Positions 6,419 through 51,180 of a DNA stretch of 64,000 nt are shown piece by piece. Source of the stretch: Antechinus flavipes (Eukaryota); the NCBI RefSeq assembly GCF_016432865.1, contig NC_067401.1, positions 558,001 through 622,000 of the forward strand, in the 5' to 3' direction. The position numbers and the translations under genes were made by a program. Within the stretch, counting starts at the first letter, position 1, and every line of letters begins with the position of its first letter. The notes below the pieces were generated by a model that was not told the DNA's origin, ran no database searches, and was given only the letters and a program-made list of their open reading frames with translations.

Positions 6419-23887
<17,469 letters not shown>

Positions 23888-25344: not shown

Positions 25345-27010
25345 CTTCTATTCAACCTACAAATATTAAGTACCTACTATGTGTTGGGTACTGTGCCAAG
25401 TGCCGAGAATTCAAATGGCTCCAGCCCTTGGAGCTCATACTCTAATAGAGCAAACAACATGCCAGTAAATATGTATAATTCAAACTCTATAAAGGATAAA
25501 TAGGGAATTGGGGAAGGCTTCCTGTAGGGGGTGAGATTTCAATTGGAACTTCAGGAAGTCAAGGAGGTCAGTAGTGGAAATGAAGGAGGGAGAGCATTCC
25601 AGAAAAAGATGCCCAGAGCAGAGACATGGACACAGAAGGCTAGAGTCACTGAACTGACTAGTACATGTCAGGAAGGAAGAGGTAAGGTGACTAGAAAGTG
25701 AGGAGGGTGCTGGGTTGTAAACTTTGAATGCCAAGTAGAACATTTTCTATTTGTTGCTGGAGGCAATATGGAGCCCCTGGAGTTTACTGAGTATGGGAAT
25801 GACTTGATCAGATTCGTGCTTTAGAAAAAAATCCCTTTGGCGGCTGAACAGGGGATGGGGTGGAGTGAAAATTTGAGCACCCTCTTTCTCCCCCTGCCCC
25901 AGCAGATATTGCTCCAGGGATGAGGCAATGGGCCTGCACCAAGAAGGGGGCAGTGTCAGAGGAGAGAAGAGGGGATATTGGAGAGATGGTGCCCAGGTGA
26001 AATCTGGAGAGGTGATGCAGATGTGAAACTGACAAGAGGAAATGGGGCGGGGACTGAAAATGACAAATAATATTGGAGAGGTAAAATTGACAAGAGGTAC
26101 TGCAGAGGTGAGATTGACAAGAGATGCTCAGAGATGATATTGACAGGAGATCCTCAGAGATACTAATTGCCAAGAGATGATCAGAGATGATATTGACAGG
26201 AGATCCTCAGAGATACTAATTGCCAAGAGATGATCAGAGATGCTGCAGAGGTGACATTGACAAGAGATGCTCAGAGATACTAATTGACAAGAGATGCTCA
26301 AAGATGATAATTGACAAGAGGAAATGGGGCAGGGACTGGAACTGACAAACAATATTGTAGAGGTAAAATTGACAAGAGGTGCTGCAGAGGTGAGATTGAC
26401 AAGAAATGCTCAGAGATGATATTGACAGGAGATGTTCAGAGATACTAATTGCCAAGAGATGATCAGAGATGAAATCGACAAGATGCTGCAGAGGTGACAT
26501 TGACAAGAGATGTTCGAGATACTAATTGACAAAAGATGCTCAAAGATGATAATTGACAAGAAATGTTACGAAGGTGTGATTGACAAGAGATGCTCAGAGA
26601 TGAAATCGACAAAGGATTCTGTAGAGATGAGATTGACAAGAGATGTCCAAAGGTGATATAACAGACCATGGCACCATATTTGATGTGGGTAAAAGAGTGA
26701 GAGTCTAGGAGGATTCTTAGGTCATGAGCCTAGGGGCACGGCAGGAAGGTGGTGATGGCCCCATGAGAATAAAGTGAGAAGCTGAGTGAGAATGTGGGAA
26801 GGTTTAGGGAAAAAGATGAATTCTTTTTTAGACATATTGATTTAAGATGTCCACTGGACATCTAGTTCAAGATGTCTGAAAGGCAGTGGGAGGCATGAGA
26901 TTGAAGGTTATTAGAGAGTTTGGGGCAGGAAAGGTAGATTTGAGAATCATCTGAATAGAGATGGTTATTAAATCCATGGGAGCTGTTAAGATCACCAGGT
27001 GAAGAAGAAG
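25345..27010 (-). mobile_element. ancient LINE-2 remnants (interrupted by minisatellite)
   Basis: caaatattaagtacctactatgtg...tactgtgccaag and ggaaggcttcctg...; L2-like ORF2 text at 26840-27000. Highly diverged. Confidence 0.5.
25975..26660. repeat. complex AG-rich minisatellite (~26-bp ATTGACAAGAGATGCTCAGAGATGAT subunits, ~280-bp higher-order duplication)
   Basis: gacaagaggaaatggggc recurs at 26031 and 26313; many ttgacaagagatg subunits. Confidence 0.85.
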
Positions 27011-27551
27011 GTAAGGAAAGCCACATTAAGTTGCTGAGCAGCCTGAAGAGGGATGTCCTGGGACTTCCTCCCTCAAAGCTCCAGGGAGGGAATGGGGAGC
27101 AGGGAAAATGGACAATGTGGAGCAGGATGGGGATCCAGGGTTGGCAGAATGTGCCGAGATGTGGCCTGAGCTCACCGTGAGGGCCAATGACAGGTTGTTG
27201 GGCTTTTGCCTTCATTCACCTCTGATGCATGGACCAGAGACCTTCCAGGGGCACTTGGGCAGGAGGTGGGTCTCTCAGGGGACTTTACTTTCAGAGGAGG
27301 TGGGCTAAGGCTAGAAAGTCTCACAGGGTGACAGGGAGTAGGGGACTGGGGGAGTGGCCAGCTTGGCTGGATTCTTTCTGAGAGTCACTGTTCCAGGTCA
27401 TTTCAGCTCAGTCATCCGGCAATAAAAAGGCTTTGCCTTCCCCAAATTAAAATGCTCAGTGTAGAAAATCATTCCTGTGGGGGTCCCAACCCTCCCCAAA
27501 CAAAAGAAATGCCAGGCTCAGCAAAGCCCCCAAGGGGCATGGGCTATTGCT

Positions 27552-27564
27552 TGCTGACTCAGGG
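27552..27564 (+). promoter_or_regulatory. Maf recognition element (T-MARE-like)
   Basis: TGCTGACTCAGGG matches TGCTGACTCAGCA at 11/13. Extra half-sites TGCTGAC 27591-27597 and TCAGCA 27518-27523. Confidence 0.65.
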
Positions 27565-27623
27565 CTGTTGAAAATTCCCAGTTGAAAGGGTGCTGACCTA
27601 GAGAGTTGGGGGTGAGGTGGGAC

Positions 27624-27629
27624 TATAAA
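27624..27629 (+). promoter_or_regulatory. TATA box of gamma-crystallin gene
   Basis: TATAAA(G) about 60 nt upstream of the MGK exon. Confidence 0.8.
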
Positions 27630-27685
27630 GAGGGATGGACCAGGCAGTTGGAGCCATCTGCTTCCACACCAAGCACTCCTGCATT

Positions 27686-27694
27686 ATGGGCAAG
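27686..27694 (+). CDS. gamma-crystallin exon 1 (MGK)
   Basis: ATG GGC AAG then gtaacc donor; about 60 nt downstream of TATAAA. Confidence 0.9.
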
Positions 27695-28756
27695 GTAACC
27701 TGGGTGACCTGGGCAGAGGGGAGAGGGGAGAGGAGGGAGTCCCTGAGCCCTGTTCTAGCCTTCCAGTTGAGGCCCAGGGATCCTGGGTAGCTCTGGTCTG
27801 GTGAGAGTCAGGAACACAGCTCATGTATGCCTTTCCCTGGCCCAGCTCAAGCCTCAGACTTTAAGCAGTGGGGCATGTTTGGGCTGCAAGAACTCACGGA
27901 GAAAATGGAGGAATGGCCTGGCTGTCACTTGCTCTCTAGGGGCCTCAGTTTCCCTGTGTGTAAATGAAAGCATTGGACTTGGAATGGTCAGAGCTCCTTC
28001 CAGTTGCTCTGATCCTGGTGTATGGCTCCAGGGCCCAGATGGGCGGCAGCGCCCAGCTTGGGCCCCTGACCCTGCTCTCTTTCCCAGATCACCTTTTATG
28101 AGGATCGCCATTTTCAAGGCCGCTGCTACGAATGCAGCGGCGACTGTGCTGACCTGCAGGCCTACTTCAGCCGCTGTAACTCCGTGCGGGTGGACAGCGG
28201 CTCCTGGGTCCTGTATGAGCAGCCCAGCTATAAAGGTTGCCAGTACTTCTTGAAACGTGGCGAGTACTCGGACTACCGCCAATGGATGGGCACAAGCGAT
28301 TCCATCCGCTCCTGCCGCCTGGTACCCAGGGTGAGTTCCTCAGGGGAACTCTGCTGTCCTAGGCAGGGTCTGGGGAGGAAGAGGTGGGCACCTGACCCTC
28401 TGGGTGGTTCTTACAGGCCCAGATGTCCATGGGCCCCCCTGTGGCCCCTGGCTCAGGCTCTCCGCTTTCTTCCATCGCAGCACGAAGGCTCTTTCCGCAT
28501 GAGGATTTATGAGAGGGAGAACTGTGCAGGCCAGATGATGGAGTTCACCGAGGACTGCCCCTCTGTCCACGACCACTTCCACCAGAGAGACGTCCTGTCT
28601 TGTAATGTCCTGGATGGTTACTGGGTCCTTTACGAGCAGCCCAACTACCAGGGCCGGCAGTACTTCCTGCGGCCTGGCGAGTACCGGCGGCACAGTGAAT
28701 GGGGGGCTGGCACCGCAGTCCTGGGCTCCTTCCGGCGGGCCACAGACACCAGTTAG
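27686..28756 (+). CDS. gamma-crystallin (3 exons: 27686-27694, 28088-28330, 28481-28756; 175 aa); orthology unresolved
   Basis: MGK micro-exon (9 nt) + 243-nt exon + 276-nt exon, all GT-AG and phase 0, the classic gamma-crystallin layout. Protein [48 protein letters not shown]...[19 protein letters not shown]...GSFRR has four Greek-key motifs and four Trp; ORF intact. Confidence 0.96.
28088..28330 (+). CDS. gamma-crystallin exon 2 (N-terminal domain, Greek keys 1-2)
   Basis: ttcccag acceptor; [11 protein letters not shown]...[10 protein letters not shown]; gtgagt donor; 243 nt. Confidence 0.96.
28481..28756 (+). CDS. gamma-crystallin exon 3 (C-terminal domain, Greek keys 3-4)
   Basis: cgcag acceptor; [27 protein letters not shown]...[10 protein letters not shown]. 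Confidence 0.96.
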
Positions 28757-28787
28757 ATGTCTGCTCAGCTCCACGCTTTCCAAACTC

Positions 28788-28793
28788 AATAAA
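28788..28793 (+). terminator. gamma-crystallin polyadenylation signal (AATAAA)
   Basis: AATAAA 32 nt after TAG; very short 3' UTR as in gamma-crystallins. Confidence 0.85.
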
Positions 28794-29164
28794 AGTATTT
28801 ATGGCTGACCTGTGGCTCTCGTTCCAGTATTGATTGACTAGTGGCTTGCATAGCATTTAATAAGGAGGTCACGGGGCCAAACCCAAACCCCATTTCTGCA
28901 CTCTCTAACTCAGGAGTTGTTATCCTGAAATTACAAAAAGGTAAACTGAGGAACCAGGAGGGAAAATGATTTTCTTCTGTCCCAGCAGAAGTCCCAGCTG
29001 CGTGATGCTGGACAAATCACTCCCAAGATCTGGGGCTGATTCCTTATTTATCTGTAAAAAAACAAAAGGGTTGCCTCCAGCATGCCTTCAGCTTACAATG
29101 TAATGTTCCCCTTTTTCTCTTTTATTTTTAATAGCATTTTACTTCTTCAAATACATGTCTTTTC

Positions 29165-31994: not shown

Positions 31995-32263
31995 NNNNNN
32001 NNNNNNNNNNNNNNNNNNNNNNNNNNNNNNNNNNNNNNNNNNNNNNNNNNNNNNNNNNNNNNNNNNNNNNNNNNNNNNNNNNNNNNNNNNNNNNNNNNNN
32101 NNNNNNNNNNNNNNNNNNNNNNNNNNNNNNNNNNNNNNNNNNNNNNNNNNNNNNNNNNNNNNNNNNNNNNNNNNNNNNNNNNNNNNNNNNNNNNNNNNNN
32201 NNNNNNNNNNNNNNNNNNNNNNNNNNNNNNNNNNNNNNNNNNNNNNNNNNNNNNNNNNNNNNN
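31995..32263. other. assembly gap (269 N)
   Basis: N run within a GA-rich simple repeat. Confidence 0.99.
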
Positions 32264-34937: not shown

Positions 34938-50560
<15,623 letters not shown>

Positions 50561-50784: not shown

Positions 50785-51180
50785 NNNNNNNNNNNNNNNN
50801 NNNNNNNNNNNNNNNNNNNNNNNNNNNNNNNNNNNNNNNNNNNNNNNNNNNNNNNNNNNNNNNNNNNNNNNNNNNNNNNNNNNNNNNNNNNNNNNNNNNN
50901 NNNNNNNNNNNNNNNNNNNNNNNNNNNNNNNNNNNNNNNNNNNNNNNNNNNNNNNNNNNNNNNNNNNNNNNNNNNNNNNNNNNNNNNNNNNNNNNNNNNN
51001 NNNNNNNNNNNNNNNNNNNNNNNNNNNNNNNNNNNNNNNNNNNNNNNNNNNNNNNNNNNNNNNNNNNNNNNNNNNNNNNNNNNNNNNNNNNNNNNNNNNN
51101 NNNNNNNNNNNNNNNNNNNNNNNNNNNNNNNNNNNNNNNNNNNNNNNNNNNNNNNNNNNNNNNNNNNNNNNNNNNNNNNN
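50785..51180. other. assembly gap (396 N)
   Basis: N run next to T/CT-rich repeats. Confidence 0.99.

Follow-up and report, generated by a model that had tools for sequence, protein, structure and literature searches.

A gamma-crystallin gene shared by marsupials and the echidna and located between PFKL and CFAP410 probably represents a lineage separate from the other mammalian gamma-crystallins

The window (the whole 64-kb stretch of DNA that was analysed) carries a gamma-crystallin gene in the interval between PFKL and CFAP410. The upstream neighbour was recognised by its last coding exon (23720..23884, + strand), which corresponds to residues 731-780, the C-terminus, of human liver-type phosphofructokinase (7lw1, E 5.4e-21); the liver type fits far better than the muscle (E 2e-8) and platelet (E 3e-7) types. 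The last coding exon of CFAP410 (34944..35078, - strand) lies downstream and matches the CFAP410 C-terminal domain (8axr, E 1.3e-7). The PFKL exon is collinear with annotated PFK genes in devil and echidna, while the CFAP410 exon is conserved with echidna and collinear with annotated LRR_9/HIND genes. The matches on either side confirm the position between these two genes that had been proposed in the preliminary description. An Rfam search of the PFKL-CFAP410 interval of the window gave no match.

The crystallin gene is encoded on the + strand and consists of three exons. A TATA box (TATAAA, 27624-27629), read from the sequence, is located 62 nt upstream of the ATG, an offset common to all three marsupial loci analysed (window, devil and Dromiciops), whereas the echidna has TATAAAA at 68 nt. 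Exon 1 (27643..27694) comprises the 5' UTR and ATGGGCAAG; its 5' end is approximate because position 27643 is the start of a spliced RNA contig and not a mapped transcription start. The coding part of this exon, ATGGGCAAG (Met-Gly-Lys), measures 9 nt (27686-27694) and is directly followed by GT. Intron 1 (27695..28087, 393 nt) separates it from exon 2 (28088..28330, 243 nt), which encodes the N-terminal domain with Greek-key motifs 1-2. Intron 2 (28331..28480, 150 nt) is in frame and stop-free. Exon 3 (28481..28808) encodes the C-terminal domain and contains the 3' UTR; its coding part of 276 nt (28481-28756) includes the TAG at 28754-28756. The signal AATAAA (28788-28793) follows 31 nt past the TAG, and a loose run of A's in an RNA contig beyond 28808 indicates a poly(A) site near this position. 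Both introns are in phase 0 with GT..AG ends, as supported by the sequence and by RNA joints, and the two large exons are additionally supported by RNA depth.

Each of the large exons encodes one Crystall domain (PF00030) that is covered completely (E 2e-31 and 1.7e-34, respectively). The spliced coding sequence of 528 nt is free of internal stops and frameshifts in the window and encodes 175 aa. With the 9-nt MGK exon, one exon per domain and phase-0 introns the gene shows the layout of the gamma-A-F genes. Thus, the intact gene that had been read from the sequence beforehand (TATA box, MGK micro-exon, exons of 243 and 276 nt, AATAAA, 175 aa) is borne out by the sequence and the RNA joints. 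The MGK micro-exon was also found in the devil, Dromiciops and echidna loci. Interpretation as a retrocopy was rejected due to the presence of the introns.

The region upstream of the ATG (27356..27685, + strand, ~330 bp) represents a conserved promoter and 5' region with long blocks that are identical in the window, devil and Dromiciops, and its core blocks are kept in the echidna too. Intron 1 could be aligned with that of Dromiciops only partially (~71 %). The block GCTCAGCAAAG (27516..27526, + strand), situated 168 nt upstream of the ATG, contains TCAGCA, the complement of the Maf half-site TGCTGA, and is identical in the window, devil, Dromiciops and echidna, in the latter at an offset of 171 nt. 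Furthermore, two TGCTGAC motifs, representing Maf-responsive half-sites, were detected 134 and 95 nt upstream of the ATG (27552..27597, + strand). They constitute the sole such pair in the window, at a chance expectation of 0.06. Both copies are kept in devil and Dromiciops; the echidna keeps the distal copy only, 136 nt upstream. Judging from these motifs, the gene may be bound and controlled by Maf factors via the putative half-sites. TATA boxes and Maf-type half-sites are expected in promoters of lens fibre-cell genes.

Transcription was followed in RNA-derived contigs from a close relative that is ~5 % diverged from the window in non-coding DNA. At the joints of these contigs precisely 393 and 150 nt are left out, each stretch being bounded by GT..AG. 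The joint across intron 1 (27694 -> 28088) was found in both runs, X5 and X7, and the joint across intron 2 in 11 contigs of X5 and in one of X7; a 576-nt contig of run X7 extends across all three exons. In run X5 the word depths add up to ~5e5-7e5 across exons 2 and 3, with zero depth inside intron 2 and none in most of intron 1. The depth in run X7 is low (~15). RNA depth stops in the bin 28764-28824, and the variants in the RNA are those of the genomic contigs of the same organism. The PFKL-linked gene is therefore transcribed and spliced in a close relative of the window species. A pseudogene was rejected based on this spliced transcript and a dN/dS of 0.03.

In a search against solved structures bovine gamma-B was the best match of the deduced protein (gamma-B and other gamma-A-F, E 9e-76), followed by gamma-M7 (E 3e-62) and gamma-S (E 3e-57). 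The AlphaFold model (pLDDT 88, pTM 0.83) superimposes on human and bovine gamma-B (2jdf, 4gcr) with a TM of 0.97 and an rmsd of 1.0 A. The fold is predicted to be exactly like that of gamma-B, a closed two-domain monomer, and the protein presumably serves as a densely packing structural protein of high refractive index in lens fibre cells.

The transcript abundance and the gene family point to the lens as the tissue of expression, the tissue labels of the runs being coded. Some beta/gamma-crystallins have been reported to serve outside the lens, and in view of the coded labels and the depth of only ~15 in X7 this conserved and transcribed gene might instead be used mainly elsewhere, e.g. in the retina. 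Such a role seems very unlikely since a depth as extreme as that in X5 is what a lens crystallin typically shows, the TATA box and Maf-type half-sites fit lens fibre-cell genes and the predicted fold is indistinguishable from that of lens gamma-B.

The arrangement PFK(+) - Crystall(+) - LRR/HIND(-) is shared by six species, namely by the window species, echidna, devil, Dromiciops, opossum and brushtail possum. Inspection of the interval in other marsupials, as recommended in the preliminary description, accordingly found the gene in all four of those included. In Dromiciops the main gamma cluster is located on chromosome CM033367 and the PFKL-linked gene on CM033368, which substantiates the earlier claim of a location outside the main cluster; Dromiciops is the only species in which a separate main cluster was demonstrated beside the PFKL-linked gene. 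Its main-cluster locus (L004) comprises two adjacent gamma genes, one of which is named 'gamma-crystallin B'. In devil and echidna a separate main cluster is suggested by the gamma-D and gamma-D-like models, respectively, whose contigs differ in length from those of the PFKL-linked gene. Flanked by PFKL and CFAP410, and on another chromosome than the cluster in Dromiciops, the gene does not belong to the tandem CRYGA-F cluster.

RefSeq/GenBank proteins with at least 90 % identity were found in about 12 marsupials, where they are annotated as 'gamma-crystallin B(-like)'. The echidna orthologue, which is 77 % identical, has likewise been modelled under this name and has its C-terminal tail in common with the marsupials, as well as the MGK exon, the TATA box and the promoter blocks. 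Since the echidna gene resides in an equal PFK-crystallin-CFAP410 setting, the lineage is older than the split of monotremes and therians. No platypus orthologue was detected among the protein matches listed. The suggestion that an ancient lineage was retained in marsupials hence holds with regard to its age, but not with regard to its restriction to marsupials, as a monotreme has it too.

The same observation bears on the alternative that a cluster gene was transposed at the DNA level specifically in marsupials, as the retained introns and the isolated position between unrelated genes might suggest. The echidna orthologue in matching synteny, sharing the tail, the MGK exon, the TATA box and the promoter blocks, contradicts this lineage-specific transposition, and the PFKL-linked clade is placed outside all marsupial main-cluster genes. 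Marsupial-specific transposition is thus effectively ruled out and is left with hardly any probability.

Comparison of the coding sequences from the window, devil, Dromiciops and echidna revealed a dN/dS of 0.030 against Dromiciops (dS 0.47), no non-synonymous and 8 synonymous changes against devil, and a dN/dS of 0.13-0.16 against echidna. The proposed check of dN/dS across marsupials thus returned a value of 0.03. The PFKL-linked gene is under strong purifying selection.

In the maximum-likelihood tree the PFKL-linked genes form their own clade (100/100), and all other sampled mammalian gamma proteins form a clade (100/99) that leaves the PFKL-linked genes outside. Both are positioned within the tetrapod gamma clade (99/96). 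Gamma-S-like proteins from a 50 %-identity representative search, 44-57 % identical, served as outgroups, and one very long branch (P0313) was omitted from the careful tree. The sister relation between the PFKL-linked clade and the whole main cluster received 78/1.6, a weak support. The PFKL-linked genes form a separate clade in this tree; their exact branching point can be proposed only provisionally. At 8 alignment columns with a clade-wide derived residue in the main cluster the PFKL-linked lineage has the derived state in 4 and the ancestral state in 4. Residues R84, C99, Q119, L123 and L165 are invariant and specific to the lineage, C99 being located where the motif-3 signature Y/F-x4-Y/F-x-G has its second aromatic residue. 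The four tryptophans and the residues at the invariant Gly/Ser positions have all been retained.

The two domains differ in their closest relatives. The N-domain is closest to eutherian gamma-A-F and adjoins the mammalian main cluster in the N-domain tree, whereas for the C-domain alone the identity to non-mammalian gammas (60-64 %) slightly exceeds that to mammalian gamma-A-F (56 %), which is explained by retained ancestral states. In the C-domain-only tree the lineage branches early with a support of 46. A chimera or gene conversion was rejected as the separate domain trees revealed no supported discordance.

The closeness of the C-domain to non-mammalian gammas, its early branching and the poorly resolved relation between the PFKL-linked clade, the amphibian genes and the main cluster would also suit a lineage of pre-amniote or pre-tetrapod age that is orthologous to an amphibian- or fish-type gamma, persists in non-eutherian mammals alone and was lost independently elsewhere. 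We consider this rather unlikely, since 4 derived residues are common to the PFKL-linked lineage and the mammalian main cluster, and the best full-length and N-domain trees place the clade beside that cluster; the early placement of the C-domain is itself unsupported. Moreover, no non-mammalian protein among the best 120 matches exceeds 70 % identity or groups with the clade, and the one Xenopus gene that was checked is located within a tandem gamma array.

Based on the annotation the gene could also be the true orthologue of eutherian CRYGB, its different location in non-eutherian mammals resulting from a move in a single lineage. Bovine gamma-B is the best solved-structure match, gamma-B is the earliest-branching group of the main-cluster clade, and the AU test did not reject a tree joining the PFKL-linked clade to the gamma-B group (delta lnL 19.2, p 0.249). 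However, gamma-B is slow-evolving, so that a best match to it is expected of any early branch. The maximum-likelihood tree excludes the PFKL-linked genes from the main-cluster clade (100/99), the lineage lacks 4 of the 8 clade-wide derived residues, and Dromiciops possesses an additional 'gamma-crystallin B' in the cluster beside another gamma gene. As the PFKL site is common to monotremes and marsupials, orthology with CRYGB requires that in eutherians the gene left this site and entered the interior of the cluster, a less parsimonious course than a loss. Neither the neighbourhood, which differs in six species, nor the grouping in the best tree identifies the gene as a CRYGB orthologue, and we regard this origin as unlikely. 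The preliminary description had counted an already named orthologue among the outcomes that would speak against it: the gene is indeed modelled in the databases as gamma-crystallin B(-like), but this name looks wrong.

Among the annotated proteins, the matches listed and the tree no eutherian protein was found with more than 71 % identity to the PFKL-linked protein or inside its clade. Nor does a published inventory of gamma genes and pseudogenes in human include one on chromosome 21 (PMC3554465). The absence from the annotated proteins and from this inventory suggests that the gene was lost on the eutherian stem.

With good confidence we therefore interpret the PFKL-linked crystallin as a functional gene of the gamma-A-F structural type that has persisted as a separate paralogous lineage at PFKL/CFAP410 since before the monotreme/therian divergence. 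Most likely it diverged at the stem of the mammalian gamma-A-F lineage, prior to the radiation of the cluster, and was probably moved or duplicated at the level of genomic DNA, introns included. The long stem branch suggests that it evolved fast for a time, with strong purifying selection since. The gene survives in marsupials and echidna, whereas eutherians appear to have lost it on their stem; it is presumably transcribed from its own TATA promoter via the conserved Maf-type half-sites. The more far-reaching reading, which we regard as somewhat probable, is that of a seventh gamma lineage of early mammals that predates the gamma-A-F radiation, occupies a fixed site at PFKL, has its own conserved Maf-type promoter and an invariant Cys for the hallmark Greek-key aromatic, still provides a major protein of the lens in marsupials and echidna, and disappeared by deletion on the eutherian stem.

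The lens owes its refractive index and its hardness to gamma-crystallins, whose gains and losses track visual ecology. The textbook set of mammalian gammas (A-F, S, N) derives from eutherians; if the more far-reaching reading is true, this repertoire is incomplete and the marsupial 'CRYGB' is a distinct, unnamed gene. According to the main evolutionary study A-F radiated from one gene prior to the monotreme split (PMC2929430). An extra conserved and strongly transcribed lineage outside the cluster enlarges this picture. The opossum set of Kappé et al. may include the gene. Searches of the literature for a crystallin linked to PFKL returned only one unrelated case report. Recognition of the lineage would correct a systematic mis-naming as 'gamma-crystallin B', by which orthology-based work on the evolution of the lens, e.g. 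in species with regressive eyes, would be misled. In addition, the Cys at the site of a signature aromatic provides biophysics with a natural variant. The lineage represents a solid yet incremental addition to a family known for expansion and contraction.

The PFKL-linked gene resembles those of the gamma-A-F cluster (CRYGA-CRYGF, human 2q33-34) in its three exons with the 9-nt MGK exon and one exon per domain, and the proteins share the length of 175 aa, two Crystall domains and 62-71 % identity. It differs in its location on another chromosome and in its introns 1 and 2, which measure 393 and 150 nt in the dasyurid gene in contrast to ~95 nt and ~2.2 kb in the Dromiciops cluster gene (L004), so that the contrast in intron size noted earlier holds. 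The promoters differ likewise, with TATAAAGAGGG and TGCTGAC sites in the PFKL-linked gene and a TATATATA context in the cluster gene. CRYGB in particular is the best solved-structure match by both sequence and fold, and the AU test is compatible with a sister relation; nevertheless, the PFKL-linked gene lies outside the cluster and the maximum-likelihood tree keeps the two apart.

The amphibian gammas (Xenopus gamma-1 to gamma-4 and relatives) belong to the same tetrapod gamma clade, are 62-70 % identical and have ancestral C-domain residues in common with the PFKL-linked protein, e.g. S-C-N-V-L-D-G. Their genes form tandem arrays, as checked for Xenopus tropicalis gamma-4, and none groups specifically with the PFKL-linked lineage. 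Gamma-S, gamma-N and fish gamma-M are members of the same superfamily with the same two-domain fold. The exclusion of the former two in the preliminary description is supported by the gene structure: gamma-S (~50 % identity) has a longer N-terminal arm, whereas the PFKL-linked protein begins with MGKITFYED without this arm, and gamma-N, described as a hybrid beta/gamma gene structure, has its C-domain split over two exons, in contrast to the single 276-nt exon observed here. The affinity to fish gamma-M that had been suggested for the C-terminal domain does not hold, since the Met-rich gamma-M proteins show the greatest distance (46-55 % identity) and form their own clade (100/98), while the PFKL-linked protein contains 4 internal Met and is placed among the tetrapod gammas.

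The gene at the centre of this analysis was found to be complete, as proposed in the preliminary description; it is small and located on the + strand. A TATA box (TATAAA, 27624, + strand) lies 62 nt upstream of the ATG, and the coding part of exon 1, the MGK micro-exon ATGGGCAAG (27686-27694, +), is directly followed by GT. Intron 1 (393 nt, AG at its end) leads to exon 2 (28088-28330, +, 243 nt), intron 2 (28331-28480, +, 150 nt) has GT..AG ends, and the coding part of exon 3 (28481-28756, +, 276 nt) ends with TAG; an AATAAA was read from the sequence at 28788 (+). The spliced frame of 528 nt encodes 175 aa, with one Crystall domain per large exon (PF00030, E 2e-31 and 1.7e-34).

The proposed neighbours were likewise confirmed by protein matches. 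The C-terminal exon of PFKL (23720-23884, +) matched residues 731-780 of 7lw1 (E 5e-21), the liver-type phosphofructokinase match being far better than that to the muscle or platelet types, and the C-terminal exon of CFAP410 (34944-35078, -) matched 8axr (E 1.3e-7), which places the crystallin gene in an 11-kb tail-to-tail gap. Runs of N (17172-17320, 31995-32263 and 50785-51180), representing assembly gaps or masked stretches, leave the gene untouched. The PFKL-crystallin gap also contains a 27/53-bp minisatellite (26113-26645, about 10-15 copies) whose counterpart region in the devil matches, and a C-rich 62/70-bp tandem repeat (36736-37040) lies just inside the 3' part of the CFAP410 region. 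A 10.2-kb minisatellite (39008-49255; 48-bp unit with a 24-bp half-unit, about 216 copies, 86 % match) is located in the CFAP410 gene body or next to it; the array also occurs in the devil (L002 19790-21123, many matches).

The PFKL-linked gene, as we term this gene and its orthologues, is real and functional. Contigs from four public sequencing runs of one closely related organism were placed on 27300-29100. Runs X1 and X2 covered exons and introns evenly with 90-95 % likeness and behave like genomic DNA from a relative diverged by about 5 %. In run X5, depth was absent from intron 2 and most of intron 1, while exons 2 and 3 reached summed word depths of about 5e5-7e5; the gaps bridged by its joints measure exactly 393 nt and 150 nt and are bounded by GT..AG, a loose end of A's followed after 28808, and one contig (depth about 276) extended from 27879 into exon 2. 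Run X7 yielded a single 576-nt contig composed of 27643-27692, 28086-28329 and 28480-28759. Since variants at 27684, 28237 and 28255 are common to the RNA contigs and the genomic contigs of the same organism, the RNA contigs derive from the orthologous locus. The abundance in X5, the tissue label of which is coded, would fit the expectation for a lens crystallin. Intron 2 is in frame and stop-free, joining exons 2 and 3 into a single open frame of 222 codons (28088-28753), and the ORF listing of the window includes an ORF of 190 aa beginning at 28184. No sign of an isoform retaining intron 2 was detected, RNA depth being absent from it.

The window protein exactly matches residues 18-192 of P0019, the "gamma-crystallin B" of Sarcophilus harrisii, and the non-coding DNA of the two loci is 84-90 % identical. 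The 90 % cluster of P0019 comprises 18 models, all named gamma-crystallin B, from opossum, Gracilinanus, Dromiciops, koala, wombat, brushtail possum, sugar glider, wallaby, bilby, Antechinus, Sminthopsis and devil. In the Antechinus flavipes model, the N-terminal sequence equals the upstream ORF of the window; together with the likeness to the devil locus, this points to a dasyurid, most likely Antechinus, as the source of the window. Among the database models P0019, P0159, P0163 and P0164, those of 192-227 aa start at upstream ATGs such as the in-frame ATG at 27635, 6 nt after the TATA box. As the spliced X7 contig begins 3' of this ATG, at 27643, these models are probably too long. Other models run through the acceptor, with "...SQ" or "...PQ" ahead of ITFYED. 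Such extensions at the N-terminus seem to be artefacts of annotation, the gene's likely product being the 175-aa protein that starts with MGK.

In the echidna, P0035 ("gamma-crystallin B-like") shares 77 % identity and the RRATDTS tail with the window protein. A canonical MGK micro-exon (ATGGGAAAG|GT) at L001:10811-10819 is skipped by the 204-aa model XP_038604723.1; if used, the echidna introns would measure about 2.25 kb and 1.43 kb. Although the echidna possesses an orthologue, none from platypus was among the protein-search hits, the platypus gene being either lost or unannotated. The order PFK (+), Crystall (+), LRR/HIND protein (-) was found in echidna, devil, opossum, brushtail possum and Dromiciops. 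This shared order excludes a marsupial-specific transposition, which had been offered as one possible origin, and the gene occupied the PFKL-CFAP410 site already in the latest ancestor shared by all extant mammals. In Dromiciops it is located on CM033368, and a cluster-type "gamma-crystallin B" adjoins another gamma gene on CM033367; the cluster-type proteins of devil and echidna are likewise encoded on contigs that differ in length from the one carrying the PFKL-linked gene.

By the Nei-Gojobori method, exons 2 and 3 gave a dN/dS of 0.030 between the window and Dromiciops (dS 0.47) and of 0.13-0.16 between marsupials and echidna; window and devil differ by no non-synonymous and 8 synonymous changes. 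Conservation among marsupials in the 330 bp 5' of the ATG is far above that of intron 1. This region contains a TGCTGAC pair 134 and 95 nt upstream of the ATG, the sole such pair in the window (0.06 expected by chance), and a TCAGCA 168 nt upstream. The echidna carries TATAAAA, TGCTGAC and TCAGCA 68, 136 and 171 nt upstream of the ATG of the micro-exon at L001:10811. We regard the TGCTGAC and TCAGCA motifs as putative half-sites of Maf type, such as lens fibre-cell genes employ.

Kappé et al. 2010 (PMC2929430), who included opossum and platypus gamma genes in their tree, concluded that the gamma-A-F genes radiated from a single gene before the monotreme split; neither PFKL nor synteny is mentioned there. 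Our tree (IQ-TREE, LG+C20+F+G4) comprised 94 proteins, including 10 PFKL-linked, 17 amphibian and 39 mammalian cluster genes (7 marsupial and 1 echidna among the latter), together with lungfish, coelacanth, ray-finned fish, shark, gamma-M and two gamma-S-like outgroups. The PFKL-linked proteins form a clade (100/100) on a long stem (0.36), and all cluster genes form another (100/99). Both nest within a tetrapod clade (99/96), the amphibian genes of which form an unresolved comb. The best tree places the PFKL-linked clade, though weakly (78/1.6), as sister to the entire mammalian cluster clade. At the 8 columns with a clade-wide derived residue in the cluster clade, the PFKL-linked lineage is derived at 4 and ancestral at 4, a pattern that would fit a lineage branching off the gamma-A-F stem.

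Alternatively, the gene could be an orthologue of CRYGB, as its annotation implies, and joining it with the gamma-B group was indeed not rejected by the AU test (delta lnL 19.2, p 0.249). However, the eutherian gene would then have had to leave the PFKL site and insert amid the cluster genes, so that paralogy followed by loss is the simpler reading. The PFKL-linked gene is already annotated under a doubtful public name, gamma-crystallin B, which hides a distinct, old, non-cluster lineage. The manatee model P0043 ("gamma-crystallin B-like", 176 aa), which contains the N-terminal domain twice and no C-terminal domain, probably reflects an assembly or modelling error in a cluster gene.

As to the loss, no eutherian protein in the searches exceeded 71 % identity or fell within the PFKL-linked clade, and the human PFKL-CFAP410 gap is presumably smaller than 2 kb. 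Human gamma genes and pseudogenes are listed at 2q33-34, 3q27.3, 7q36.1 and 2p16.3 only (Wistow 2012, PMC3554465). Taken together, these points suggest that the gene was likely lost in eutherians.

The C-terminal domain had been described as resembling amphibian and fish gamma-M types. It is indeed nearer to non-mammals (60-64 % identity) than to eutherian A-F (56 %), but the Met-rich gamma-M proteins show the lowest identity (46-55 %). The N-terminal domain shares 74 % with eutherian A-F versus 64-71 % with non-mammals, and these domain identities account for the earlier impression; separate trees of the two domains showed no supported conflict. Residues R84 (linker), C99, Q119, L123 and L165 are invariant and specific to the lineage, C99 replacing the second aromatic of the motif-3 signature (Y-x4-C-x-G), a state found in about 1 % of the other alignment sequences. 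The protein retains all 4 tryptophans as well as the invariant glycines and serines, and over 174 residues its AlphaFold model (pLDDT 88, pTM 0.83) superimposes on human and bovine gamma-B (TM 0.97, 1.0 A). Structurally, the PFKL-linked gene is an ordinary gamma-crystallin gene.
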